Shown here piece by piece: positions 20,932 through 57,060 of a stretch of DNA of 64,000 bases. Source of the stretch: Iphione sp. A-MEVVRFRX5 (taxonomy: Eukaryota); the NCBI GenBank assembly GCA_976226885.1, contig OZ320318.1:80042001-80106000 (forward strand), read 5' to 3'. The notes beneath the pieces were generated by a model. It had not been told where the DNA came from, did not search any database, and worked only from the letters and a program-made list of their open reading frames with translations. The position numbers and the translations under genes are program-made. Within the stretch, counting starts at the first letter, position 1. Every line of letters starts with the position of its first letter.

Positions 20932-21122
20932 CCCCCGCATGAATCACATGCCTCGCATGAATCACATGCCCCGCATGTATCACATGCCCCGCATGTACCA
21001 CATGCCCCGCATGTACCACATGCCTCGCATGTATCACATGCCCCGCATGTACCACATGCCCTGCATGTACCACATGCCTGGCATGTACCACATGCCTCGC
21101 ATGTCTCACATGCCTCACATGC
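20932..21122. repeat. 9/18-bp CATG-cored minisatellite starting at the Ctr stop codon
   Basis: CATG recurs every 9 bp (cccgcatgtaccacatgc-type units) about 21 times. Confidence 0.95.
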
Positions 21123-21310
21123 AGTGGTCTCCGTTCATAATGTGTCTTCTCCATGCAAACAAGAAGTAGCCGACCACAGAGCCAACCGCAATAGCTCCAC
21201 ACAACCAGAGGTTAAAGGTCATAAAGACTAACATGAGCAGGTAGGCATAGATCAGCTGGATTCCATTCAACAGAGACTGAACCACGTGCATCCATGAGAA
21301 CATCTGATTC
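21115..21310 (-). CDS. SLC31A1: Ctr copper transporter, last exon (TM2, TM3, C-terminus)
   Basis: ttccag acceptor in phase 2. NQMFSWMHVVQSLLNGIQLIYAYLLMLVFMTFNLWLCGAIAVGSVVGYFLFAWRR...DHCM* carries the Ctr MxxxM (MLVFM) and GxxxG (GSVVG) motifs. Symbol is family-level; orthology not established. Confidence 0.95.
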
Positions 21311-22506: not shown

Positions 22507-22633
22507 CTATAAGAGCTTTTCTCTGTGTATTTTCCTGCTCTTACATGTCTCCTCAAAATTTCCTGCCGCATCACTTTGAATCCCTCATACAAAACCGAGG
22601 CGGCACCAACGCCAAAGGCTGAGGCCAGTAAAC
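22507..22633 (-). CDS. SLC31A1: Ctr copper transporter, TM1 exon
   Basis: ttag acceptor, AG|GTAAG donor, phase 1 to 2. GLLASAFGVGAASVLYEGFKVMRQEILRR matches the Ctr 'LYEGLK.R' motif. Confidence 0.93.
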
Positions 22634-22862: not shown

Positions 22863-22929
22863 CTAGCCAGGTGCTGGTAGCCCACTCCTCAAAGAGGATC
22901 ACCGTGTGATAGGACACATGGAAGTAGCC
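22863..22929 (-). CDS. SLC31A1: Ctr copper transporter, 67-nt exon before TM1
   Basis: cacag acceptor, G|GTTGGT donor, phase 0 to 1. GYFHVSYHTVILFEEWATSTWL matches Ctr 'xF....ILF..W'. Confidence 0.9.
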
Positions 22930-23580: not shown

Positions 23581-24042
23581 ATAATGCCCCGCTACGTCGT
23601 GTACAGCACCATGTCCACCGTTTTCAGCAGTCCTAGTTCCATGCCCATAACCATGCTGTGTAGTGTCTCCATGATCGCTACCTTCACCGTGAGTGTGGTC
23701 ATGCACCTTGTGACCATTGTGACCCCATGTTCCATCTCCTCCGTGTTTTCCGTGATCCAATGGACCATGCATAGAGTTATTTGCCATTCCGTGATCCATC
23801 GGCGCATGCATGGTGTGATTCACCGATCGTGACGACGTGTCATTTGTCATTCCATGATCAACCGAACCATGTATCATGTTATTTTTTATTCCGTCGTTCA
23901 TCAACCCTTGCATGGTGTGATTCACTGATCTTTCACTCGTGTCATTTGTCATTCCCTGGTCCATCGCATCATGCACCATGTTGTTTCCAAAATGCATTAC
24001 TGCTGGCATAGAGGAATTCTCAGCTGTATGATCGCCGTGGCT
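23581..24042 (-). CDS. SLC31A1: Ctr copper transporter, His/Met-rich extracellular N-terminal exon
   Basis: cttttgcag acceptor, TAT|GTAAGC donor, phase 0 to 0. 154 codons with about 24 His, 13 Met and 6 N-x-S/T sequons by hand count. First in-frame ATG at 24009. Confidence 0.88.
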
Positions 24043-24306
24043 CTGCAAAAGAGATTATATATAGTATAAAGAATGTTTGTAAATAAATGAACTGGCTCCT
24101 AAAAGAGCTGGAGGCAAGCAAAGTGGCTTCTTTGGTTGTTTCATTTGATGGAGATGAATACCATTAATGTGACTTCAACAAATTAGTTTTGCAATTATGT
24201 ACATACAATAAAACGTGCTATCTTCTGCCAAACATGAAAAACTACCCCTCTGAAACGTGTTCTGTTCATTTTGTGATTACCATCTTGTACCAGCAGGGTT
24301 ATGAAT

Positions 24307-24550
24307 GGAGAGTTAGCTCAGTTGGTAAGAGTACTGACTAGCCCTGGTCAACTGATTGAGAGGTTGTAAGTTCGATCCTGGGTCTGGAACTCTTGATCAT
24401 GACCAGACAGATTTACTCTAGCCCCAACCCAGAGTGGTCCACAACTTATACCAAAGGTTATGGGTACATGGGATTCTTTGCCCTGTGCACAGGGCGACCC
24501 CAGAAACCTGACTGAAATAAGAGTAGGGGGCAACTCCAAGTATTCTAGTC
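24307..24550 (+). mobile_element. tRNA-derived SINE
   Basis: Pol III A box TAGCTCAGTTGG and B box GTTCGATCC, followed by a non-tRNA body. Homologous to 38488-38720. Confidence 0.85.
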
Positions 24551-26800
24551 TCTCATTTCTCATTAATAAATGGTAGTACTTATGCTACCCCAGGAGGATA
24601 TGGAAGAAGAGCTGAAAAACCTGAATATCAAGTTTCTGGTTAAATATATGAGAAAGCAAATCTATATATATATATATATGCATCTGCTCTTGATACAGTT
24701 CCCAAAAAGTTCAGCTATGAATCTTCCCAGGAGAAGTAGGCCTATATGCAATTCATGAGCGGATATTAGGCAAACTACTCTAACAGAGAACGAAGAACAA
24801 AGGACTTTACCTAAAAACGTTAAGTTACTACCGTGCGCATGATCAATCAGGAGCGTACTATAACGTTTGAATATCTTTTGCCCACTGCTGTAAATTTAAA
24901 ATATTATCTTTCTACTATATTTACACCAGTTCTGACATTAAATTTTGTAAACCATGAGTGAGCACAGGTGTGAACCAAACAAACCACATTTTGAACGAAA
25001 TCCTTCTAATTTTGTGAGGTTGTCGCCCCGTCTTGACTATCTTTTTAAAGAAATCCTGGTCAAATTCTTAACAACTGGAGCACTCCAAAAAGGATACTAG
25101 TAAAACGTTGGTATGCACAGAATAGATTTAGTAGATAACCAACACAGAAAACCCTCTGAATATAGCATTTTGTCTTATTCTTGCTGACACTTTCCTTCAC
25201 TTCTCAATTCTAGAAATGCCTGGGATCCTTGCTGGTTTGCTTATGCATGTACATAACTGTGGTTTTCCTAATAAAATAAATATTCAGGATTATATGAGAT
25301 GAAGTTTTTTCCCTGGGAAATTCATACTTGGGAGGTCTAGTATCACTGTACAATGGCCTGAGAGCCTGGCTTGAATGTGCAACTTATCCAATGTTATATC
25401 ACTGAATAATGGACTGTGGCACTGCCCTGAATCTAAAACTCATAATATTCTGTATCACGGCAGCGTCCTGGCGGACGCTGTTCAAAGGTACAACTTCTTA
25501 GAATTCGTATCACTGCACCATTAGACTGAGACGCGGATGCTTTGTCAGCGTGCTACATTCTGAACTAGAGCATCCGGACTGACTTTACAGTATTTTCATA
25601 CGACTGAGTGTAATTAAAACATATATTTAAAAAATATATGTAATTTTCAATAAAAACGCTTCTTAATATGTTAAACATTTTGTGTTGGTCGCCAATATTG
25701 GTCTGGTCGTTCTTGAAGGTGCAGACATCGGAGTGATCACAGCAACAAACAATGAACCAAGCAAGGTTTTCTTACTGGGATTTCTGTGCCTTTCGTCACC
25801 CCTTTGTATAATCCGGTAGGTAAAGCATGAGAGAGGCAAGTGATCTTTTCAGTAAACGAGGTCACTGCAGGCAGCAAGAAGTGCTTAATGTTGAGGATCC
25901 GATGAAACTGCTATGAATGGTATGTGGAGAGGTATTGTGTCAGGAGCGGTGTGGTTTATTTGTCCCCAATTACAATGTATACGCGATTATACTAAGAGGT
26001 GCAACAGTCCTTCACGGCAAAATTTACGTTTTAAGTTCTTCACTGAAAAAAAAATAATGTTCGGAGATAATCGACAGAAGTCCATGAGGGAAATAAGCGT
26101 CGATTTAGTGCTGTCAACTCGAAGTAACATCAGAAAAGGAGGAATTCGGGAAAAAGGGGAAAGTGAGAGCTTTACTGTTTTAAGCTACAGATGTATATCT
26201 AAAGTATTTATCTTATATTTTTGTTAGTTCTAAAGGTGAGTAAAAAGATACAACAATGACAAATACTCAAGACAAAGATCGGTATTCAGAAACCAAACGC
26301 CTGGCATTCTGAGCTCTAAGAATTCCTGACGGAATATTTTTTTTAATTAGCGTGAATCACTCCGTTAAAAATAAGCTTCGTTTCCAGGAGGTTCTCTAAT
26401 AGCGGTGTAACTGTATGGAAAATATATTACGCGACAACATTGTGTGCATGTAGATATTACACAATATGGAACAATTACACAAACATGTATAATTATATGG
26501 GTAGTTTACCTCAAATATAGATACAAAATCAGACAACTTAGATTGGATGAGCAGTTCTTTTTTTTTTAAGACATCACATTCTGCTGCTAGCAACTAATCA
26601 AATATACCTTAAAGCATATCACATGACGACCGTTTATGATGACATCACAGATGGAGAATTTGACATGAGACTATTCAGCGTGACGGTTTTAATTACAGTA
26701 GTACTTTTGGCACTTGCACTGGGTGTTTAGAGTGTGTGTGGGAGTACCGGTTAAGCCGTATGACTGCAACCACCTGAAGAAACATTGAAGGACATATCAG

Positions 26801-26804
<4 letters not shown>

Positions 26805-26842
<38 letters not shown>
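26805..26842. repeat. (CT)n microsatellite
   Basis: Direct inspection. Confidence 0.97.
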
Positions 26843-26845
<3 letters not shown>

Positions 26846-29800
26846 CTCATTAAATATCTGGAAGTGTCCATTTTTCTAGTATTCTCCTACATATGATATC
26901 AAGGGAACGCAACTTTACTAAAATCACATTGGTCTCAGAGTGCCTGTATACAGAACTACATTTGATTCTACTTCCTCCAGCCAATCTAAATGAGTAGTCT
27001 AACAGGTGTAAAATGCTGCGGGGGGTGCGGTCAGAAAGACCCTTGTATGTACACGGATTAGTGGATTTGGTCTTAAATTGGTTACTGTTCATCATAGAGA
27101 TTAATACTTTGGTTCCCAGCTACAATGGTCTGAAATCGAATTTGGTCTTAAAACGATGTGGTCTGAAATAGGGTATCGACTGCATATCGTTTTCCGTGCC
27201 GAACATGTGTTAACATTTTGTGTCCTGCAAGAAAATCGCCGATTTTTTTTCAGAAGGCAAACTGTTTTGAAGAGAAAAGACGACATTTGTAAATTATCGT
27301 CTGGGCGAAAAACGGTAATCACCGTAATCTTTCTCGGCTGTTTCACAACACTCCTCCCGAATGAGGTTACGTAAAATGAGGGAGCATACAGCGATGACGT
27401 TTTTGTAACGTTAAAAAAGTCAACGGGTCATTAAACCGTGGGAATCATTCTGTGAATAAACTTTTCGGCCCCAAAGAGGCCCTCGATAGAACAGAGTAAG
27501 ATGATTCCTAACAGAAATTAGGATCCAGAGAAAATATATTTATTTAAGTAAGAATATGCCATTTTAGAAGATGTACTATATGCCATATAATTCCAAGCAA
27601 ACTATAAATAGGCCTACTGAAGCAATCTATGTTTCATGATCAAATAACATACATGTATAGAATCCATTACTTAATGCAGCTGACTAGTGTCTATTCGATT
27701 TTTGATTCATCATCCAGACTCATCTTTCATTTTATTCGCCTGTTTGATTAACCACGTACTCTATGAACGTCATTGTTGTTCAAGCTTGCATGGTATCTCT
27801 TATTGCCTGTAAAATATGTTTATTATACCCTGTGTCTATACAGAGTGAACAAGAAATCCTGGTACCATTTACGGATTGCCAGGTAAAATATGTGAATAGG
27901 AAACAAAAATCGAATGACAGTCCCTTTTGATAACATAATCCAGACAATGCGTCTGTCTCAGAGCTTTTAGATGGAAGACAAAATAGTTCCTATGGCATAA
28001 AACACATATCCTACACACTGTCATGACACCAATTAAGTAGATTTAGACTAGACGGGAACTTCCCTTCGACTAAATAGCATGCAGTCTATGTATCTGTTCT
28101 TTCATGGACTTCATCTATACCAAAGCAATGCTAATATATGTTAAGATTCCTAACACATAATGCGATTCCATATTTCCATACCAGCATCTCCACTTTTATA
28201 CTTAGCACAAGTTTCACATGTACACGTTTTTGAGCGGACACATTTGCATTTCTGGAGGGATATTGAACTCAACTAGCTTATTCACATCCGCATGTGGACG
28301 TAACTAATGGATAGGCTTGTATTTCTCAAACCCGTCCACGAATGGGTTTAAAATGCAACATGTTCCCTGATAACATTTGAAAGCACTGCATGAGGACATG
28401 GTATTATCATCATCATTACGCACCTTAATGCTGGATACGTGAAGAACACACCATTGTGCATGAAAACTCAAACTGTACATAATAAAACCCGCCTTATTGC
28501 AATCCTAGCGACTCGCTTTTCTAAACAAAGTGCTGAGATATGAAGTTTATCACCAGCACAGAAGGTTGGTTGCTAAATGTGTCTGTGAACAGAATCGTTA
28601 TCTGTGACTGTGTGAATTTATGGTTAGATTTCGCGGTGTGACTGTGTAAACTCAAGCATCGGGTGGTCCAAGCGCCAATGAAAAACATTACCGAAGGGGG
28701 ATATCTTTACACCTCCCAGGCTAGAGTGAGTTTTTTTCACAATGGTAGCACATGTGAGAGTTCAGATATGACAGTTGAGATTAGTACCTCGTCCGTTTTT
28801 ATTTTTAATTAACTCCACAAAGATGCCGAACTTTGGCTTCAGTTTCGAAATACCAATTTCCACAATGTTTTTTGCAGAAAATCGGAAAAACGGAGGAACA
28901 ACGGAAAGCTAGATCATCTGCACGGCTCACGTCCAATTTACTTACAGTCAAATGTTTATTTACAGTCAAATGCCGCTTCTTCGAGTGTTCAACACTTAGA
29001 ATTCCTCACTATTTCGAGCAAACAAGGTAACAGTGACTTTACTATTGATACATAAGGATTCATTACTTGACCTAGTTCATTTCACCAGACTGCCTGATCG
29101 ACTGAGTACTAGACTGCTACCAGCTGATACTGGTAGAAGGGAAATATTGGTGAGTGTGTGTATGTGCATATGTGTGCATTGTCAGGTCTAGGAATTCCTA
29201 AACCAGGTATGTATGTTTGTAAGTGTGTTAGCAAAAAGTCAAATTGACATAATTTCACCTTTAAGATTCTTGAATTACTACTAAGATTACCTAGTGCCAT
29301 ATGGCCATATAAACAAATATTATATTAAAATCAGTCCTTTTGAGTGAAGAGTTTGAGAGTTATAAGACCCACAAGAATGTGAAAGAAGGTCAGGACAATC
29401 AGCCAGCAGCATTCCCAAGGTCCCCCCTTTCTATAAGGCAGGGAACGCTAATGATAGAGACTTATAAAAGACACCATGTTCTTCCTTATGGCATTACATT
29501 TCATACCTACTGACCCTAATAGTGTTCAACATGTTACTGCAAACAAGTACACTTTCCCTTATGGCTTAATGAAGCTTGGTCGCCTGAATATAGATGTGTG
29601 TAGATACATTTAGATATACGATGAGTTAGTAGTAGCTTCATAAAGTTTGTCAGTGCAGTTCAGAAATAAAGTACCTTACGTATAGGACAAAGATTTAACA
29701 CCAAATGCAATTTCTACATCTGTATACAGCTCCAACAATTCCTACTGCTCAAAAGAATGCTGGTTGCAATGGCTGCCCGCCTTAATGGCTGACGATCTGT

Positions 29801-29847
29801 ATGGCCATCCATGGTCATTTATGGCTGGTATTTTTCTGTAAATATGG

Positions 29848-29895
29848 CTAACCCTAACCCTAACCCTAATCCCAACCCTAACCCTAACCCTAACC
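29848..29895. repeat. Interstitial (CCCTAA)n telomere-like tract
   Basis: About 8 hexamers with one variant stretch. Confidence 0.9.
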
Positions 29896-30750
29896 ACAAC
29901 AGGGCATATCAACTGAACACCCTGGCCATATAAACCCGGCCATAAGTTACACCGGCCACTCTGACTGGCACCCTGCCTATGGTTTGGGGGAACAGAGTAT
30001 AACAGCAGGAGTGTATCCATGTATCTGTGTAGCATGTAGCATGTTGTATGTTTCTGTGTAGCATGTATCGAATGGGAACTATGGTTAACTAGGAAGGTGT
30101 AATTGAGGAACGCGCAACCCAGATACACATCAACACAGTAAGACTTCAAGGCACTCCATAGTGCTCCACATTGCTCTGCAGTACACCATGCTACATGGTC
30201 ACATGTATATTGAGCCTTAGGCCTGGTTTCCATTAACGCAGGAGGATGCGGAAGGGTGTGGAGGCTGTCCTGGTGCATTTGGGTTGTGCATGTGTTATGC
30301 ACTGCCCCGCACCCTTCTCTATTGAGAGCTAGTGTGTTACGGTGCTTGAGATGGTGTGAGATGGCGAAATAGCAGTGCGTGGCCATGTGTAAGTGTGTAT
30401 ATGCTGAAAATTATTGAGCATATACCAAAAATGAGGCATACACGCTCCATTTATGCATGGTTATGCACACAGACGTCTATGCACGTAGAGAAGGCTCTCT
30501 ATGGTTAAGCCTTTGCTCATAAAATACACGTCTATGCATGTCTATGCACATGCATGCTTCCGCCTAAATCTGTTGCAGGGATAAGCGAACCTATAAAAGA
30601 CCCATGTGCCATAATGTTACTGTATACTGACGTGTGTCATGGCGGCACTCAACTGAATGAATTGTTCCCACTTGGTCTAGAAGGAATACCCAAGCTTTCG
30701 AAGCTTTCGCAATAATGAGTAGTGGCTAACGGAAAAGCTACGTACATGTA

Positions 30751-31050
30751 TAGAGGATACTCCAAAACCGAACGATCGCCGTTTCCGCCAAAATCATTCG
30801 GTTTTGGGATAATTCGGATTTCGATTTTTTAGATTGTGGCAAAGTCAAGAAGGAAGTGCCGAAAAACGGCAAATTTCAAGTAGAAAGTGACGAAAAACGG
30901 CTATTTCATGGAGATTTAGGCAAATTCCATGGAGAAAGTGCACCAAAACGGCGAGCATGGGGGTTAGCATTCGGTTTTTGAGTATAATTTCAATGTATCT
31001 TAATCAAATAACAGCGTTCGGTTTCGGATTTTGAATATTTCGGATATATG
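30751..31050. mobile_element. Truncated copy of the 2145-2901 MITE family
   Basis: Shares ccaaaaccgaacgatc...ccgccaaaatc...gggataattc and ttcggatt...gaatatttcggatatatg. Confidence 0.75.
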
Positions 31051-32689
31051 TATATATGTATGTTATACTTTACCCTATTCTGCCTCAATTTTAGCTGCAG
31101 AAAATTCTCCACTTAGTTTTGCAGATGGTGCTTGACGATAAAGCTGACTAAACAGCACACGGTCACTCAAAATTCTACTAGTCCCTATGATCACGCTCAA
31201 GAAACAGTGAATCAATAATCACGTGCTAATATATATAAGACTGTATTATTCATTAACGGGAGAGAGTAAAATTATAGCACCACCACCATCCGGTTGCAAT
31301 ATTAATCTGGTTTTAAAGAGCAAAGCATTCATCTCGTTGGCTTCCTTCTGCTTGGCCAGGTGATTCAGGTGTCGAACATTCATGCAAGAGGCTGGAGGTT
31401 CACATTATGGTGTTGCCATCTCAGAAATACATGTGCATGTATCAAAAAATAATAACCTTTTAGCTGGAACCCGTGGATATCCATTCTCACATGTTAGGCC
31501 CTAATAAAGCCCTTGTATATTTCGTTGATACAGACACTTGTTCATACTACAGCAAAGATTCTGTATCTAGAAAATAGTGTTTTTTTTCGGGACCAGCGGT
31601 CAAGCACACCAGAACAACGCTAGAAGGAATAATTTTGGGAACCTATAAAATACATGTACATCACTTGTTGTAAACGTATGCCACATCCACATGCACACCC
31701 ACGAGCAACTTCCCTAACACACTCACACACACACACAATTCTAATTTCCCCTACACACACGCGCGCACATACGGACACCCGCTTCCTGCCGTCCCTTCCT
31801 GAGAACAATTGAATTGTAAATCAAATCTCGCTTGACGCTCAAATAGCCAGGTCTCACCTTACTGGAGTGACAACGGTCTGAACAGGCCTAGTCTAAGAGT
31901 CTTTCATATTAAAATAGCGACGAAAGCTGGGCTGGTTCACAGGGGGATCGTATTTGTTATCCGAGAGTTGTGTGATTTGGCCATAGAATGTTGTCTGGCT
32001 CTTCCCAGTATTCCAATTGGTGATATTATTCACATTATTTTCATACTCAAAATTCCTTGCAATCGCAGATTATCTTCGCTAATAATGCTGTTTATGGTAT
32101 TTTGATCGATTAAATAATCTTAAAATAGTAACCGTTATAACACAGTTGTGTTATACGGATGAGTAGAAGTAACGTATTTTAGAGAGACAGAAATGTTTGT
32201 TGTCGAGTCTGCAGATAAAAGAATGAAGGATACAGTGTAGTATGGTAGAACTGAGTTCTGGTATAACGCATGTGGGAGTCGGGAGTAACTAATACTGTAT
32301 TGTGCAGGGGAAAACAGTAATTCAAATGTATAATACCGGATAAAAGTAAATATGCTGCAGGACATGCACTCGTGAAGTCCTAAGGTTCTGATGTAGTGAC
32401 AGGATTGAAATAAGATAGGGGCCTCTGAGCTTTCGCCTGAGAAAACCCCTTTATTCTTAGTAGGGGTAATCTGAAAACTTGATCTCATATCGGAGTTGAT
32501 GCTTTTAACCTTTTGGACGGAGACTAATGTACGAGTTATTGGATTATAAAATGCTTTGTGCTCAATGGCACGTCAGTCTGCTCTTTGCTGAACCTGAACC
32601 TGAAACCTGATCATGTGCGTATTAATTGTCTTTGTTCATCAAAATGCACGAAGTATCACGATCTAAATAACCCTTCAAAGTAGTCTTCC

Positions 32690-33010
32690 TTCGTTATAAA
32701 AAAAAACTGTGTTTCCGGTCATATATAGAAAAAATATAGGGTTGGCAGGTCGGCGATTTTTTCCTTTTGTTCAGTGTTAATGGATCCTAAAAGACCAAAT
32801 ATGTATGGAAGTACCACCTTTACTGCTGATATTTTAATTTAACTTATATTACATGAAAGCCAGTGATGCAAGGAGCAAAATGGTGTATTGTATTAGTCTT
32901 CAGCATAATTAATTCGGAAGATATATACAAAAAAGAAACAAAATTACACCAGGCCCAAATGTAGGGTCGGTGAGGTTATCGTAAACAGAAAACATTTTAA
33001 GTCGTCCTTA
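32690..33010. mobile_element. Degenerate Harbinger-like MITE
   Basis: aaaaaaaactgtgtttccgg at left and gtagggtcggtgaggttatcgtaaacag...cctta at right resemble the ends of 49443-49767. Confidence 0.45.
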
Positions 33011-33311
33011 ATTTACTTCACTGTGCACTGATTGTTGACCTCTTAAATGTTATTTCTTTGTATTTGTACATTTTCATTTTTTCTACAGTTTCAAACAAAT
33101 GGGGAGGATCAAGTAAGTTTTACACCAAAATATGTGTATGTTGCACAAGATAAACATGGTTGCATAGTCCTCAACACTTAGCAAGTATATCATGAATATT
33201 CTGGAACATGCACTGAACAATCATAGAAAAAAGTCTAATTGGACAGGTTTTCCTCCTCTGTGTGTCTTGAAAATGAGCAACTGACTACAAAATGTTCCCA
33301 TCTCGACTCAC

Positions 33312-33386
33312 CTGGGCATCCACCGCCAGAGGGACCGAGATGACAGCTATGACCACCAGAAGGCACCACCTCACTGAGGGCATCAT
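33312..33386 (-). CDS. Signal-peptide exon, probably the first coding exon of the Ctr gene
   Basis: ATG ATG...CAG|GTGAGT encodes MMPSVRWCLLVVIAVISVPLAVDAQ: basic n-region, hydrophobic core, V-D-A cleavage motif. Phase 0 matches the acceptor at 24042. Linkage to Ctr is inferred. Confidence 0.65.
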
Positions 33387-34242
33387 GATCGGGGGTCTTC
33401 AGATAATGGTCGCAACTCGTCGGCGTATTGTTTGATGGAGGTTCGTAGTTTTTATGACGTGTGGTGACACACTAGGCCATCGAAGCAGTGTCTGCTGTCA
33501 CGTCCATGCTACACCTGTCAGAGTATCAGATGGTAATTTCATTAAAATAACTGTAATTACAAACGTTTGTCAGCCAAAGAACTTTGTGGCGTCGAAACAA
33601 CCATTTTTAAAGAGCATTTAAGGATTGAATCCCGCATGAAAGGTAACAAAAATAACTAAAACTTGTAAACGCAGATGGCAGAAATAAAATCAATTCAATT
33701 CAATCTAAATGTCACAGACTATAAGTGTCACGTAGAACTTGTTATACACCACTAAGCAGTGCCTACCATACCATTTTAAAGCACGGCTGCCATCTTTTTT
33801 TCTGTTTAGGCCTATATGAGTAACCGTGGCTGTATTTCGTATAAACCCACGGGACCATGGGCATATGTCGCACTGAAATAAAGCTGTGAAAAGACTGCTT
33901 GGGGGCGTGCAGCAGTGATTACATAAGAGTCGTGCTTACTGAAACATAACGGACACCCGGGTGAAAGAAACTTTTACCATTTATTTAAAATAGCATATTG
34001 CATGAAATAATTCTCGTTACAATATAAAATGTGACATACCAAATAAATAAATTAATATAAATTTGCAATGGAAAAACATCATGTGAATGAAAAAGACATA
34101 CAATGGCATAAGTGGAAAAGTGATATACGAAAACATACATATTAATCACAATGACATATAATAGTAATAACTGAGCCAATATTTCCAACCATTTCTTCAG
34201 AGACATGTGAAATACAAATAGATACGTTGTTCATTGGCATAA

Positions 34243-35836
34243 TTATAGCTGGACGACAACCCTTTTGCCATCTTTGATTATGGCCACCTCAAACACGTCA
34301 CTCGGTACAACCACAGTAAACATTTTGCGATCAATCATAGAGGCAATGTCTACGGTGCCTGCTGGTGGGGGGACGGTTAGTGAGTTTTCTGTTTGTGTAC
34401 TGATAGAAGTGAATTGTGAAGAGAGAGACATGTATTGTGGGTTAGGGGCTGTGTGTGAAGGGGTTTGCACATTCTCTGGATTAGATTTGGTGGATTTTGG
34501 AGGAGGCGGCTGGAGTGAGTTACTTATCCGCTTCTCCAAGTCCAAGGAGGGCCTCTTGTACAATCGTACTGCATTCGATCGATGTCCACTCCGAGAAGTG
34601 ATCGCCTGCTCATCGAATTCCTGTTCATACATAGTCGTACACAGAGTGACTTTTCCAGAATGTCCACTTATATTTCGGCCCTCTGTATCGATCCCGGCTG
34701 CCTGAAACATTGATTGCATGTATTGCGACAATTTGTTTATGCCCACATGTTGCAGACTAAAAATAACATGGCCATTGACGTTCTGCATTGGACGCCTGTA
34801 GAATCGTCCAGTGTTGGGTACACACTCAATGTACTTTTTGAAAAGCTTGACTACACATCGTTCATTTGCTGGTTGACCATAGTGACGGACGACACGGGGT
34901 GCTGCCTTGGAATTTACCTTACCAGTCACGGTTTTTGCAAGCCTTCCATTAAACTGAAGATACTCAGTACCATCTCTCTCCTTACCAAATGTATACTGTT
35001 CAACCTGAAGATTAACGTGCTCATCTTTGGCCCGAAAGCCAAAGATTTTGCAGTTGTAAAAATAGCACGCATAAGAGAGAGCCTGACCTGTGTGCATGCC
35101 AATGATACCAGATTCCCATAGTTCCACCTCCTCTTCCATGGATATGGGGTCGGCTCGTGTAGGATTACATCCAATACCTCTGGCAATGAGTACTTTTCGT
35201 CGGGCGTCGAGGGCATCCCTGAATTTCTTGAAATTCACGTCGTCTTTTTTCAAAAGCCAAATGTTGGATCTACCAAGGACATCCCGCATGTAACGCTGGA
35301 TAGAGGCAGCGATATTGGTGAGTGTGCCTGCAATATACAATATAATACCGATTCTGTTTAGGTTTGTGTGCTGGTTGGGGCCCCCCATTCCCTAGGCAAT
35401 TGGAATTGTACTTACCAGGTGGATAGTCGTCTTGATTTTGCTTGCGAATTTCGGTAATAAAGCAAGCCAACCAGTAGTCGAGGAGTGGCAAATTGTCAGT
35501 TGATAATGCAGGTACAGGCCAATTTTTGTCGAGATGTGACTTGCTGTGACCATTTCTCCAGGTCCTGCATTCTCTGTATATATTGTGGGCCCAGTTTGAG
35601 GATTGTTGTGTATTCTTGGGGATCCGGCATGCAATAGGAGCTTGAAATTCATGATCAGTTTGAACTTCACCAAAACGATTATCATGGTAATCCTCATCCA
35701 GAGACACTTGACTTTGTGATTGACAAGTAGACTGTTGACTTGGTGATTGTATAGTAGACTGCATTAGGGGAGAATATTCTTGACTTTGTGACAAATTGTA
35801 CTGTCTCTCTAACTCATCAGCTTGAGTGAGCAACAT
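34243..35836 (-). CDS. DUF3504-family tyrosine recombinase, join(35836..35416,35327..34243), 501 aa
   Basis: An 88-nt G|GTAAGT...ttgcag intron gives LDYWLACFITEIRKQNQDDYPPGTLTNIAASIQRYMR. YR motifs present: FGFRAKDEH, GHSGKVT, SRSGHRS..VRLYKR. No stops in the spliced frame; the N-terminus may be truncated. Confidence 0.9.
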
Positions 35837-35963
35837 GTCCAGTGTTGGGTACACACTCAATGTACTTTTTGAAAAGCTTGACTACACATCGTTCATTTGC
35901 TGGTTGACCATAGTGACGGACGACACGGGGTGCTGCCTTGGAATTTACCTTACCAGTCACGGT
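35837..35963. repeat. 127-bp direct copy of 34806-34932
   Basis: Base-for-base identical on inspection; offset 1031 bp. Confidence 0.95.
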
Positions 35964-37170: not shown

Positions 37171-38487
37171 CATCGGCCATAATCTTTGAAAATTCATATT
37201 GCATTCTGGTCACCTTAGCAGAGAGCAAACGAGAAATTGAGGACGGTAGCAGTCGGTATTTTTAAAACGATGAAAGGACGTTTCATCTCAGTAATATATA
37301 TTAGAAATACGCTAAGAAATCTTTGGCTGGTCGTCCGGTTATTGAAAGAAATTTGCTACATGCTAGACCTGACAACATTACCTTTTATTACGCTATCATT
37401 CCAATATTAACAAAGTGCGCCGTCGTTGGAAATCTCGCTTATTGTATCTGTTTCCTCATGTGGATATTTGTATGAAATTTTATGTATGTATGCGTGTGTG
37501 TGAATGTATGTACGTACCTGGATTTACAATGCACTGAATAGTCCTATTGTATTCCTGTGTGGCCACGTCGGTTCCCAGAGGCTACTGTGTGCAGACAGCC
37601 CGTCTGACGTTTGTTTTATTCCCGCGTGTGTATGTATGTGTGTGTGCGTGCGTGCCTACCTACCTACCTGCGTGTGTCTGTAATTCGAATTGTGCAGATG
37701 TTAGCTCAGCCAATCTGACATTGGCTTGGTGTGTATTTCACACCCTCTCAGGTCCGATGGCTAGGTCAGTCAGGATTCACCAACAGTCCTGTCGTATACC
37801 AAAGGGATTCGCTGTGGGACTTTGGTTGAAGGGTAGTGAAAGGGATGGGGGTTTGAAACAGGGAGAGGAGTTGAAGAGTAGTGAAGCGGGTGGGGTTGGA
37901 CGTGGAGGGGGGGGGGGGGCGTTGAAATAGGGCAACGCGCGACGCTTGGAGATTGAGCGGCACCTGTCACGGTAAGCTCTGGCCCGGTACGCCCTGCCAC
38001 TCACTACCCGATCCGGCCACCAAACAGCACCGACTCCCAGATGTCGCCACCCGCAGCAGCCCTAAAACTTGTAGACCCGTCCCTCAGTAAAATTGTCAGT
38101 GCAAGTTCGACAAGAGATTTAAAAAAATAAAAGTCATGCAATTCAAAAGTTTTTGAAAAAAAAACGACACGAAAGGTAACTGTTCTGCGTATAAATATAT
38201 GGACTGACAAGACGGGCGAGTATGTTCTATGGATCTTGATCAGACCATCCCATACAAATGATACTGAAATAACACCGATGTGCCACGTGCCACTGTGTGA
38301 ACCTGAGATGGCGATCATCCCGTCCCGAAACAAATTTTGCACTCTCACAATCCAGGCAGCACAGAACGTTTTCATTTTCATTTCATTTCATTGTATCTTT
38401 AACCAGGAACTAGATATTCCCAATCACATGGTAGGGCTCTTCCATATCCTCCTGGGGTAGCATACTACAATCTATTGTTGAGATTTG

Positions 38488-38720
38488 AGACCAGAATACC
38501 CGGGGTTATCCCCTACTCTTATTTCGAATAGGTTTCTGGGGTCTTTTTGTGCATAGGAGACAGAATCCTATACACCCACGGCCTTTTTATGAGTTGTGGA
38601 CCACTCTGGGTTGGGGCTCAAGTAAAACCTGTCTGGTTGTGATCAAAAGTCCCAAGCCTGGGATTGAACCTGGGACCTCTCAATCAGTGGACCAGTGCTC
38701 TACCACTGAGCTAACTCCCC
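38488..38720 (-). mobile_element. tRNA-derived SINE, second copy
   Basis: Reverse-complement homolog of 24307-24550, including A/B boxes and the ccccaacccagagtggtccacaac body. Confidence 0.85.
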
Positions 38721-39590
38721 ACCCATGAACATTTGATAACATTTTTATAAATGTTATAAAAAAACACATTTTTACTTGATTATAACGTTTCCAACAATTT
38801 TAAAACATTTGAAAAACGTTTGGAGACATCTGAGGGCAACAGGAGGACGGCCAAGGACATGGGTAGCACTTGCAGAGGTATGGCAGACATCTGAGGGTGA
38901 CAGGAGGACGATCAAGGCCATGGGAGTACCTGGAGAGGTGTGAAGACCTCTGAGCACAACAGGAGGACGAGGAAGGATGTGGGTAGCTACCTATAGAGGT
39001 GTGGCGAATTCTGAAGCTGACAGGAGGACGGGCAAGGACGTGGGTAGCACTTGATGAGGGATAATGACTTCTAGGGATGACAGGAGGATGGGAAAGGCCA
39101 GGGGAGCTCGTGACAGTGTGCGAGGACTTCTGAGTGACCGGAGGATGGCCAACGACGTGGGTACCACCCGGAGAGGTTTGGGAACGTCTAAGAGCTACAA
39201 GGGGAGAGTCAAGAATGAGAAGGACACCTGTAGAGGTGTGAGGACTTCTAAGATTGACAGAAGAGATGTGGCAATGTCTAAGAGCTATAGAAGGACAGCC
39301 AAGGATGAAGTGGTACAGCGGATGAGAGCATCAGCTTTTACATAGGACATGTACGTAGAGACAACTCATGACTAAGGAGCCAGGGTCAAACCTCCCCAAG
39401 CCCAGGCCCTCAAAGTCTCACACTTTTTCTAAAAAAAATCTAAAACCGTAATACAATAATATTATAAAAATGTTCTTTTTTTATCTAGTTAAGAAAACAT
39501 TATGCAAACTTCATTTACAATGTTTTTTCATTTAGAACCTTTTTTTAACGTTTTTACAACGTTTCTACAACACTTCTGTGTTGGCTGGGA
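38721..39590. mobile_element. Unclassified TIR element carrying ~55-bp purine-rich tandem units
   Basis: Right end caacacttctgtgttggctggg, left aacgtt-rich arm, internal caggaggac(g/a)gccaagg units. Sister copy at 46192-46958. Confidence 0.65.
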
Positions 39591-52651: not shown

Positions 52652-55600
52652 GTGACCTGTTTCAGCGAAATGAGTCGGAAGTCGCAGGGACTAAAACCGA
52701 GATATGGGCCTCCAAAGGCGGATGTCCGTCAAAATATTGAAAATGGGGTTTTTATTGTTTTCATATCTATCATGTCTCAAGTTTATTCTGTGAAAAAATT
52801 AGACTCCCACGATGAATATAAGTGCCTGCAATATGGCTCTGAAGGTAGTAACTGCTTGAATGCATACAGACAAAAGAACCCTCGCTCGGGGCTATTTTTT
52901 CCAAACTTCAGCAGCTCACTTTTGGGTCCTCCCATCATCTTAGGCCCACTTCCCGGGTACCTGCTGAAAGCGCGTGAATTTCCCTAGCCAATGACGCCTT
53001 CAGATTTTGAAAGTGCATTCTTTCTGACCAATGACGAGCCGTTTTAAAGGGGGACGTCATGTAAACAATCGTTGCCATGGGGGTCACGTGTGGTGAATGC
53101 CGTGCGCCGATTGGTCGAAAGCCTCCCGCGTGCACGTGTTTGGGTCAGTTTAAATGTCTGGCTTCGCAGTGAGGGGACGTGGGTCGCTGCTCTAGCCGTG
53201 GATAATAATTAATAGAGATGGGAATAACGTAGCATTTGGATGCAGAAGTGTCTGCCAACAACCAGGGATGGCCACGGATCGGGCTCAAGCCTTGGCAGAT
53301 GCTTTAAACAACATCAGTCGGGCCAATTTACATGGCGTGGCTGCAGAGGCACAATGGCGGAATCTCGTGGATGAGTACTTTCTCTATGAGGAGGAGGTGG
53401 AGGAGGGCCTGGCTGATGAGGAGGAGGTGGAGGAGATAGAAGAACAATCGGAGGAAGAGGAGGAACCCTCAGGAGAGGTTGAGGATTCACTGGTAGTCAC
53501 CAATCCTACTGAGGAGATCCTGAAAGACGAGTGGGCACGCTGTGAAAACTTCAGGTAAGTTCTCTTAATCTGCCATAACAGTGATGTGCAGTTGCACTGA
53601 ACAATCGAAGACCAAACTATTAGAAAATTGTCCCTATAGTTACAAATCCCTTTACAGATTCTTAAGTATCTGGTGAACATGTTAGAATAGAATCTTGTGA
53701 ACATGTTAGAATAGGTTTTTGTATTTAGGGCCATTTTAGAATTTTTTAAACTATGAGAAACTGAACATAATTATGAACATTTTCTGTAGGTGTTTAGACT
53801 ATTGTATTTAGGGCCATTGTAATTTTTTTTTTTGAACTGGGAAACTGACCACGTGAAAATTGCCTGCAGGTGCTCTTGTAAACACTACAATGACGACAAC
53901 TGCAGCAAACAGTTCACGGCAACTGAGTTGGCAGACAGACGGCAGGAGGTTTTCCAGCTGTCTTCAGGTACTTATTGTTTCCCGAACTTGTCCAACCTGT
54001 TGAGATTGTAATTATGTAACCATTCTGCATTTCTTCTTTAAGATGTGTAACTGGAAAGATCACTTCAATTTGACGTGTGCCAAAATCATTAGTATTATTG
54101 ACTTGTCAGTGTAACCCTTGCCAGAAAAAACCAATATTATGTCAATCCTATCCATCTTGATGAGACGTCATGTATACCTGTCTCTTCTAGGAGAAAAAGA
54201 CATGCTTCTGCAAGGCATAATAAGTACAGTGACAGACATAAGTGCCATGACCTCAACATGGAAGAAGGGGGAAAAGGGGAAGCACGAGCGACGTGCTCCA
54301 TGCAGCCACTACATGATTGGTTCCAAGGTCATTTGCAGGGACACCTTTAAGTTTATGTATGCGTGAGTATCCCTCATCCTTGTACCTATTATTTTCTTAC
54401 AGGTAGCTTAATGCTAAAATGTAATTTCATGTATTTATAGTGCTAACAGTATGAGTCAATAGATAAGTATATCAGAGGAGTCATGGAGTATGTAACCACC
54501 CACCAATTAAACATGACAACCAACATGCACTTGTATTTATGGTCTACTCTCTTGGTTAGATATTAAGGGTGTTTCACTTTGCCTTCCAGCATCAGCCAAA
54601 ACAAACTGACCAGCATTATTCAATGGTATAAGGACAACGGCGTTGTCCCCCGTGTCAAGAGGGCTGGTGGGAGACAGTCCAAAACCAAGATCCTCCACCT
54701 CACCGATATCCAGAGAGTCGCAGGGTTCCTCACCTCGTATGCTGAGACCAACGCCCTTGTCCTGCCTGGCCGTATAGCTACCCACAAGCGTGATGATATT
54801 CTCCTCCTCCCCTCATCTGCCACTAAGGCAGACATCTACAAACTGTATCGTCAAGCTATGGAAGAGTCTGAGTACAGGTGTGTAGCAGACTCCACATTCC
54901 GGAATTTGTGGCTACAAGTTCTTCCCCGTATAGTTTGTTCCCGCCCAAAAACTGACCTATGTTGGGAATGTCAGCGTAACTACAGGGATATTTCCTCATC
55001 AAGTAATCTCCCCGAGGTAGTCAAGGCAGCAAAACTTAAGAAGCAGCAGAAACATCTGGAGGTTGTAACAGCGGAAAGGACATTTTATCAGAATATGGTG
55101 AAGAATGCCAAGGCTGCCTACCGGGAAGCCAATGCCCCAGTCCTTGGTCCACACCCACCTTGTTCCGTAGACATAGCTACTCATATCAGTTTTGATTATG
55201 CCCAGCAGGTCCACCTCCCCTCCTCCCCCATGCAGCCTGGGCCTCTTTATTTTCTAGTCCCACGGAAGGTGGGTATCTTCGGGGTGTGCAATGAGGCTAT
55301 TCCCAAGCAGGTCAACTATCTTATAGATGAGGGACACTGTGGGAGCAAGGGATCAAATGCTGTAATCTCATATTTGCACCACTATTTTGAGAAGTTTGAT
55401 CTGGGTTCTTGCTCTGTGGATCTGCACTGCGACAACTGCAGTGGCCAGAACAAGAACAATTGGGTGCTAGCATATCTGATGTGGAGGGTCCTGACTGGTC
55501 GGCACCACACACTAACTTTGAACTTTCTTATAACTGGCCACACAAAGTTTGCACCGGACTGGTGCTTCGGTTTACTGAAACAGAAGTTTCGGCATGAGTC

Positions 55601-57060
55601 AGTATCTAGCTTATCCGATTTGTCTCAAACAGTACTGAGGAGTACCCATGATCAGGTCAATGTTCCCCAACTTGTTGGGGATGAGTCTGGGAATGTCTAT
55701 GTCCCAACCTATGACTGGCAAGCTTTCCTCTCGCCTTTTATCCGATGTTTGCCAGGTATTAAGCAGTTTCACCATTTTGAGTTCTCCAACCAGAACCCTG
55801 GGGTTATCTCTTACCGTGAGTATGCAGACAGCCAGCCAAACACTTTCAAGATGTTAAGTGTTGACCCCCAAGCAGTCCCCAGGGGCCCTCCTCCACCCGT
55901 TCCCTCCCCCGGTTTGTCTACCAAGAGACAGTGGTATCTGTTCAAGAACATCAGGGACTTCTGCACAGAGGAGACCAAAGACATTATGTGCCCGAAGCCA
56001 TCTGTTCCTGAGCCCAAGGTGACAGAAGCAGAGTCAGACACAGAGCCAGGACCAGCTCCAGGACCAGCTCCAGGCCCAGCTCCAGGCCCAGCTCCAGGAC
56101 CTGGTGAGGAACGCCCTGCACGAGGCAGAGGCAGGGGCAGAGGCAGGGGCAGAGGCAGGGGCAGAGGCAGAGGCAGAGGTAGGGGCCGTGGGCGTGCCCA
56201 GACCCCTGACACTTCAGAGGAGGAGGAGGAGGAGGAGGAGGAGGAGGAGGAGACGTTCAGGCAAATGGAGAGGTCCAGCTCGGACCAGGACTCTGACTTT
56301 GAACCTGAGCTACAAGCAAAGCCACAACGTAAGCGTGGTAAAGGAGGTCGTGGTCGACCAAAAAAGACCAGATAAACTTGTTCTACTTGTTCTACTGCTG
56401 ATGTTTGAATAATTATGTGCAATTGAAAACCACAAGTGGTTTCACTAATAAGTTTTACCAAGACTTTTTTCAAGACAGTTCATTATTTATTTTTATTTTT
56501 ATTTATACCTCCAAGACAATGGTTTCAACCAATCCAAGACAATCTTAAGACAATCATGAACACTTATGCAGACTATTTTACAAGACCAGGGTCAACCTAC
56601 AGCCCCTTTTTTGTCTTCTAGATGGAGGTACTGTGATACTTTTTGCTTGCCTTATTAGGTTAAGTTTTCCATTCCAGAGTGGAATTTTGTCACATTTTCA
56701 GAGGCCGGCATGAATAAAATATTATGTCTCAAAATGCATGGTTCTTTGGTATTTTGTAGCTTAGATAGTGTAGATAGACTATGTTGAGTTTCAGGAAGAT
56801 TGAGAAAAAAGAAGAAGCTGTTGCTAGGGTAGACTGCCATATAGTGCGGTACCAAAACTTCGAACGCAAATATCTCAGTTTCTCTGTTACGGTTTACCGC
56901 ATCACTATATAACTTCGTCGTTTCACTACATTTTGCCTAATTCCAGTAGGAAGATGCGCTATACCTCGTTTTAAAGGTCAGAAACTACATTTTTTCATAG
57001 AATATATAACTCAAATTTGATTTTTTCCGACTTCCGACTCATTTTGCCAAAACGGGTCAC
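52652..57060 (+). mobile_element. Full-length Sola1-like DNA transposon (4409 bp)
   Basis: ATAT target duplication (AWWT type) on both sides. 33-bp TIRs GTGACC...GAGTCGGAAGTCG with 4 mismatches. Intact transposase gene. Confidence 0.85.
53268..56375 (+). CDS. DDD transposase, join(53268..53554,53870..53967,54191..54362,54590..56375), 780 aa
   Basis: All introns GT-AG, phases 2, 1 and 2, and total length a multiple of 3. Catalytic-like motifs SFDYAQQ, CDNCSGQNKN and GHTKFAPDWCFG. The tail has PGPA repeats, (RG)n, poly-E and RGRPKK. Confidence 0.9.

Follow-up and report, generated by a model that had tools for sequence, protein, structure and literature searches.

According to textbooks, the N-terminus of the copper importer Ctr1 is inserted with no help from a signal peptide, and studies of its Cu(II)-binding tip have focused on the human Met-Asp-His sequence. 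In human CTR1 (hCTR1/SLC31A1), this sequence is an amino-terminal Cu(II)- and Ni(II)-binding (ATCUN) site (PMC8953729, PMC9117721). Elsewhere, a signal peptide is documented for the copper transporter PF14_0369 of Plasmodium falciparum (PMC3528452), and a predicted signal was noted in a soluble algal CTR3 (bioRxiv 10.1101/2023.10.19.563170). Only these two cases turned up in our literature search, and no paper on signal peptides in animal Ctr1 was found. Here, we describe a Ctr1 gene on the minus strand of a 64,000-nucleotide (nt) stretch of Iphione sp. A-MEVVRFRX5 DNA (contig OZ320318.1, positions 80,042,001 to 80,106,000), hereafter called the window, in which all coordinates below are given. 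We favour, with a probability of about 0.7, a five-exon copper importer of the Ctr1/SLC31 family, whose first exon codes for a signal peptide only and is joined, by removal of a 9.3-kb intron, to the ectodomain exon that begins at 24042. As far as we searched, this architecture is present in databases and, in the literature found, apparently undiscussed for animals.

Exon structure and predicted product of the Ctr gene

All five coding exons are on the minus strand. Coding exon 1 (33312..33386, 75 nt) starts with an ATG at 33386, five codons downstream of an in-frame TGA, and encodes a 25-codon signal peptide, MMPSVRWCLLVVIAVISVPLAVDAQ, ending in phase 0. This peptide consists of an n-region (MMPSVR), an h-region (WCLLVVIAVISV) and a c-region (PLAVDA), followed by Q. 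The exon 1 donor, CAG/GTGAGT (a slash marks a junction or a cut throughout), matches the consensus perfectly, and the frame reading through into the intron stops after 8 codons. The proposed intron 1 (24043..33311) measures 9,269 nt. Coding exon 2 (23581..24042, 462 nt, phase 0-0) encodes a 154-amino-acid (aa) ectodomain rich in His, Met and Asn, with a strong acceptor, tctcttttgcag/AGC, and the donor gtaagc; its peptide starts with SHGDHTAENSSMPAVMHF (SHGDH) and ends with AGHY, and an in-frame TAA is located four codons 5' of the acceptor. An alternative in-frame ATG at 24007..24009, codon 12 of this exon, has a weak context (t at -3) and would start a 272-aa model.

Downstream, coding exon 3 (22863..22929, 67 nt, phase 0 to 1) encodes GYFHVSYHTVILFEEWATSTWL, the conserved block preceding the first transmembrane segment (TM1). 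Coding exon 4 (22507..22633, 127 nt, phase 1 to 2) carries TM1 (LLASAFGVGAASVLYEGFKV) and the cytosolic loop, and coding exon 5 (21115..21310, 196 nt, phase 2 to stop) carries TM2 with MLVFM, TM3 with GSVVG and the C-terminus NGDHCM, before a TGA stop codon at 21115-21117. The window is without runs of N. An earlier note on this DNA had paired an orphan signal-peptide exon with a Ctr ectodomain exon, both in phase 0 and on the same strand, and had proposed a joined protein of 308 aa. The exon coordinates and splice signals agree with this pairing, and the five exons joined give a coding sequence of 927 nt and a protein of exactly that length. The predicted sequence at the junction of exons 1 and 2 is GATGCCCAG/AGCCACGGC.

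By its sequence, the protein is a member of the Ctr/SLC31 copper transporter family, as the earlier note had it. Exon 5 alone matched the Pfam Ctr family PF04145 with 53.3 bits (cut-off 25.3) and an E-value of 6e-14. A phmmer search of 1.84 billion representatives returned 779 relatives (E up to 0.001), and all those looked up by name or Pfam record were Ctr proteins; the closest, from amphioxus, is 59% identical across TM2-TM3. The hydropathy profile predicts an N-terminal signal and three further hydrophobic segments, with TM1 spanning about 198-220 and TM2-TM3 forming a block around 253-298. TM1 carries LYEG, the MxxxM of TM2 is MLVFM (residues 270-274) and the GxxxG of TM3 is GSVVG. The part of the protein beyond the signal and ectodomain would act like any Ctr1: a presumed trimer with three TM helices, in which MxxxM is the filter in TM2 and GxxxG serves for packing in TM3.

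The 154 ectodomain residues of exon 2 include 24 His, 13 Met, 25 Gly, 14 Asn and six N-x-S/T sequons, as well as an internal duplication (GMTNDTSxRSVNHTM, present twice). In yeast and human Ctr1, a Met motif about 20 residues before TM1 is needed for high-affinity uptake. No such motif was found at this position in the window protein, where the last Met is residue 116 and TM1 begins near residue 198. The segment before TM1 reads GHYGYFHVSYH instead and resembles the GHNLYFYFGH and GHNTYFYFGH of the amphioxus B and D paralog groups. This difference may mean His-based delivery or a lower affinity. Among the sequence features that mark a Ctr1, the Met motif next to TM1 is the one exception; all others were found.

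Compared with human hCTR1, the window protein shares the Ctr fold signature, three TM segments, the MxxxM, GxxxG and LYEG motifs, a His/Met-rich N-glycosylated ectodomain, a Cys-containing C-terminal triad (HCM here, HCH in human) and, as predicted here, an X-X-His sequence at the mature N-terminus. It differs in that the human ectodomain is about 65 aa long and starts, without a signal, at Met1-Asp2-His3, whereas the Iphione ectodomain, of about 155 aa, is predicted to stand behind a cleavable signal with its own exon. Moreover, it has no Met cluster next to TM1; more than 80 residues separate its last Met from TM1. Identity to vertebrate CTR1 is only about 30-40%.

Signal-bearing relatives and the probable join of exons 1 and 2

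Exon 1 follows the rules for signal peptides, with a positive n-region, a 12-residue h-region, V at -3, A at -1 and P at -6. By the (-3,-1) rule, cuts are conceivable after residue 24 (VDA/QSH), 26 (AQS/HGD) and 28 (SHG/DHT). The first has ideal spacing, in keeping with the cleavable signal and VDA/Q cut suggested in the earlier note; the other two are weaker by spacing and would expose HGDH or DHT instead. The signal peptide would drive co-translational translocation of the ectodomain into the lumen of the endoplasmic reticulum. The domain so exported would be hydrophilic, N-glycosylated, rich in His and Met, and unusually long. Signal peptidase would most likely cut after Ala24, leaving Gln-Ser-His-Gly-Asp-His as the mature N-terminus. 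Long N-tails generally need a signal peptide, and we infer that getting the long tail across the membrane is the main job of this one.

Signal-like N-termini recur in other animal Ctr1 proteins. They were found in all four Ctr1-like paralog groups of Branchiostoma (B. floridae, B. belcheri, B. lanceolatum and hybrid assemblies), in the acorn worm Glandiceps talaboti, in the mite Panonychus citri and in two related, vertebrate-like marine metatranscripts. The mite gene has no introns, and an uninterrupted open reading frame (ORF) with an upstream in-frame stop runs through the marine transcripts; signal and ectodomain are therefore certainly contiguous in these cases. By comparison, Plasmodium PF14_0369 agrees with the statement in the earlier note that some apicomplexan Ctr proteins have signal peptides (PMC3528452). 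It comes from a protist, carries trafficking signals specific to the parasite and is not closely related, and no X-X-His argument has been made for it.

For comparison of exon plans, three RefSeq models were mapped exactly onto their genomic loci. Exon lengths are 78/57/79/199/202 nt in B. floridae XP_035685530 (P0001), 114/405/79/169/202 nt in B. belcheri XP_019619350 (P0091) and 81/285/67/172/211 nt in Glandiceps XP_077986117, against 75/462/67/127/196 nt in the window gene. All four genes begin with a short phase-0 signal exon, followed by an ectodomain exon of phase 0-0 and by exons of phase 0-1, 1-2 and 2-end. Exon 3 measures 67 nt in both the window gene and the acorn worm. In these two genes and in amphioxus group C, the signal exon extends past the predicted cut by one to four residues.

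The amphioxus paralogs (XP_035685530.1, XP_019619322.1, XP_019619350.1) thus share with the window gene the signal exon, the repeat-rich 0-0 ectodomain exon and the phases, as well as the highest TM2-TM3 identity; their B and D groups also replace the Met motif before TM1 with GH-x-x-YF, and in the XP_019619350 group the mature chain is predicted to begin with Gln-Asp-His. They differ from it in overall identity (31-40%), in the length of intron 1 (0.4-2.5 kb, against 9.3 kb here) and in forming tandem Ctr clusters, compared with a single Ctr gene in this window. These entries, named 'high affinity copper uptake protein 1-like', are computer-predicted models on which no paper was found. The Glandiceps protein (XP_077986117.1) has the same phases, the same exon 3 length and a predicted cut before Gln (TTA/QSSK); it differs in having no His at +3, a His/Thr-dominated ectodomain and a retained Met next to TM1 (MAMYFY).

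In B. belcheri (KV411513.1) and B. floridae (CM022893.1), two to three Ctr1-like genes are clustered in tandem within 12-15 kb. Every product retrieved from these clusters begins with a signal peptide; the retrieved set lacks that of one B. floridae gene (329 aa). The marine contigs (JGI 3300018694 / 3300018952, Logan ERR1712042; P0272, P0342) encode a CTR1 that groups inside the vertebrates, with 61-65% identity to teleost CTR1. A 22-residue signal-like extension (MSRSWSAVLLWSCVCLWFLSEA/QG...) precedes the canonical MDHSNHDH and is kept in two related species. These transcripts may be exceptions among vertebrate CTR1 proteins. What the earlier note said of vertebrates stands for the human Met-Asp-His site (PMC8953729) and possibly fails where it denied them any signal.

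Among the sampled Ctr proteins, signal-like N-termini occurred in 13 of 22 with an N-terminal region of at least 100 aa and in 9 of 188 with a shorter one. In this sample, which is query-biased and phylogenetically non-independent, the signal-bearing form is thus associated with ectodomains longer than about 100 residues.

The case for the join of 33312 to 24042 rests on comparison. Since the annotated amphioxus and acorn-worm Ctr1 genes have the same succession of signal exon and ectodomain exon, we regard this join as very probable. The splice signals are consistent with it. The 9-mer donor CAGGTGAGT occurs only twice in 128 kb (both strands), and the exon 2 acceptor is the best of the gene. 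Acceptors of this quality occur at 1.3e-3 per base; the 46 nt from the in-frame stop to ATG 24009 would thus hold about 0.02 of them in phase 0 by chance. The window was also scanned for signal exons, defined as ATG-started, signal-like open stretches ending in a GTRAG donor, a crude scan with mononucleotide shuffles as control. On the minus strand of the 64 kb it returned exon 1 alone, plus the Ctr TM2-TM3 block as a false positive; the plus strand gave two poorer candidates. Shuffled sequence yielded about 1.2 signal-like exons per 128 kb; requiring the right strand, phase 0 and a distance of at most 10 kb upstream lowers the chance expectation to about 0.03, and a perfect donor lowers it further.

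Several observations weigh against this gene model. Intron 1, at 9.3 kb, is far longer than the other introns of the gene (0.2-1.2 kb). No sequencing run was listed in searches with exons 2-5 (RNA) or with exon 2 alone (any kind), and scans of metagenomes and metatranscriptomes with exon 2 peptides and with the 3' end of exon 1 gave no match. The species' own protein was not found by word-index searches with the exon 2 frame, amphioxus P0091 or a mixed alignment. Indeed, the 168-aa open frame holding exon 2 had no match in the 92-294 aa range, and searches seeded by P0091 or by the mixed alignment containing exon pieces from the window returned no close relative either. In a maximum-likelihood tree, the branch of the window protein is long (1.59), and the protein does not group with the signal-bearing clades; its placement is unresolved, and we therefore claim no orthology to them. 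The shared exon plan may be convergent or ancestral. The association of signals with long tails is subject to the sampling bias mentioned above. To these are added the internal ATG and the signal-less amphioxus isoforms, taken up in the following paragraph, and the points on the mature tip given in the next section.

If exon 2 were the first coding exon, translation from ATG 24009 would give a signal-less 272-aa Ctr1 and the exon at 33386 would be unrelated. The transcript would then begin shortly before exon 2 or with a noncoding exon further upstream; in a variant, signal-bearing and signal-less forms could be isoforms from alternative promoters. Most sampled Ctr1 proteins do lack a signal peptide (the 188 short-tailed ones include the nine signal-like cases), as in vertebrates, yeast and most animals, and so do several long-tailed ones (P0146, P0122, P0302). 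A TATA-like TATATATAA at 24055-24063, about 50 nt upstream of ATG 24009 and overlapping the in-frame stop just 5' of the acceptor, could be an internal promoter, and some amphioxus loci carry a signal-less isoform model (P0151) beside a signal-bearing one (P0153). Against this, a strong phase-0 acceptor lies exactly where the open frame starts, the 11 codons preceding ATG 24009 are already of ectodomain type (SHGDH, an NSS sequon), and this ATG has a pyrimidine (T) at -3, a poor context, where ATG 33386 has A. Moreover, the closest architectural relatives use a signal exon. We consider translation from ATG 24009 unlikely. It is even less probable, in our estimate, that the signal exon is real and belongs to another transcript, from an unrecognised gene within intron 1, or that extra small exons intervene, so that the mature N-terminus is not QSHGDH. 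The 9.3-kb interval is long and unannotated, and a scan of it turned up only one cassette candidate (25910-25776) that keeps the frame and has usable splice signals. That candidate is weak, ordinary in composition and not rich in His or Met. None of the ORFs in the interval matches Pfam. Two candidates of 35 nt and 89 nt proposed in the earlier note fail, because neither length is divisible by three and including them would shift the reading frame. Downstream of exon 1 on the minus strand, no other Ctr exon or recognisable coding exon was found before exon 2. Rfam and tRNA scans of the window returned nothing, which leaves no intronic RNA gene to consider in calling the intron.

The possibility that exon 1 is part of a repeat was rejected, no other copy being present within the window. 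Intron 1 holds a few dispersed repeats. One is a 300-bp element at 24306-24607, just upstream of exon 2, with a second copy at 38438-38721 in opposite orientation and 76% identity.

For annotation, the lesson of the favoured five-exon model is that the first exon of such genes can sit many kilobases upstream and is easily missed.

The predicted mature N-terminus

X-X-His sites made by proteolysis occur in soluble proteins with proven Cu(II) binding: DAH in serum albumin, DTH in hepcidin and DSH in histatin. A cut after Ala24 would expose Gln-Ser-His in the window protein, with His at +3 and a residue other than Pro at position 2. As in those proteins, the X-X-His N-terminus would exist only once the leader is removed; the differences are that here both cleavage and binding are predicted, and that residue 1 is a Gln, which can cyclise. 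N-terminal Gln cyclises readily to pyroglutamate, a common modification in secreted proteins. Cyclisation would abolish an ATCUN site because it removes the amine that the site needs.

Some patterns favour a functional X-X-His tip. Among 181 signal-less Ctr1 proteins, His occupies residue 3 in 54%, compared with only 4% and 10% at residues 2 and 4 and an ectodomain average of 18%; this enrichment is in line with the Met-Asp-His site published for human CTR1 (PMC8953729, PMC9117721). In the amphioxus XP_019619350 group, the sequence A/QDHRMRHQHG is invariant in three species, in which the signal peptide and the following residues vary. One marine transcript also reads SEA/QGHHGDD at the predicted cut. 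Apart from this QGH and the amphioxus QDH, no X-X-His was seen among the other signal-bearing Ctr1 lineages.

It is possible, with the odds clearly against it, that the X-X-His tip binds Cu(II) in the ATCUN manner and so takes the place of the Met-X-His of ordinary Ctr1. We give about an even chance to the alternative that the signal is cleaved and the Gln-Ser-His tip has no special role, Gln1 being cyclised, copper being gathered by the internal His and Met clusters, and the His at +3 being a by-product of a 16%-His ectodomain (24 of 154 residues). From ectodomain composition, the chance of a His at +3 is about 0.18, and in a 16%-His domain it is a one-in-six event. It is absent from six of nine signal-bearing lineages or species: residues +1 to +3 are TPT, AAT and ATT/TTT in amphioxus groups B, C and D, QSS in the acorn worm and EET in the mite, and the close relative of the marine QGH transcript reads SEA/QGALVDD. 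N-terminal Gln cyclisation is, in addition, established chemistry. What this alternative explains less well is the specificity of His for residue 3 of ordinary Ctr1 and the invariance of the amphioxus QDH terminus.

That pyroglutamate formation could switch off Cu(II) capture, as the earlier note proposed, is pure speculation and very unlikely; no paper linking pyroglutamate to Ctr1 was found in the literature search. In an equally doubtful extension, animal Ctr1 proteins that gained a signal for the export of very long ectodomains would re-create X-X-His with Gln1 at the cut (QSH, QDH, QGH), and cyclisation would irreversibly end Cu(II) capture. If true, Gln cyclisation would be a maturation or age timer on a metal transporter.

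Returning to the five-exon model, its interest is that signal-peptide Ctr1 recurs in animals, from amphioxus, acorn worm and mite to marine plankton transcripts. If the cut does expose X-X-His, these proteins would offer a natural experiment on the importance of the ATCUN tip for copper uptake, and on its tuning by N-terminal chemistry (free Gln versus pyroglutamate).

Flanking sequences

The 5' flank of the gene (33387..33825, minus strand), between exon 1 and a Crypton insertion, is a putative promoter. It contains a TATA-like cataaaaa at 33449-33456, about 65 nt before ATG 33386, and a short upstream ORF lies further up. The insertion, about 440 bp upstream of exon 1, is a Crypton-like tyrosine-recombinase element (34246-35881, minus strand) with a 382-aa ORF (34246-35391) that matches DUF3504 (1.7e-18) and, weakly, Phage_integrase. 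Since it lies 5' of the gene, the promoter would be confined to 33387-33825. Metal-response elements (TGCRCNC) are not enriched: 36 were counted where 37.5 would be expected, and the 440-bp 5' flank has none, which gives no support for MTF-1 control.

At the 3' end lies an 18-bp minisatellite (20933-21114) of 10 copies with 91% matches, which begins 1 nt past the Ctr stop codon. Read on the gene strand, its three frames give HVVHAG-type His repeats, Cys-rich ACGTC repeats and Met-rich GMWYM repeats, the latter interrupted by stops. A frameshift or an alternative 3' splice would append a tail that looks metal-binding; the minisatellite is probably just a repeat of the 3' untranslated region. 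Further away, a 602-aa open frame on the plus strand (54567-56372) matches DUF7869 (3.7e-20) and probably encodes a transposon protein unrelated to the Ctr gene.

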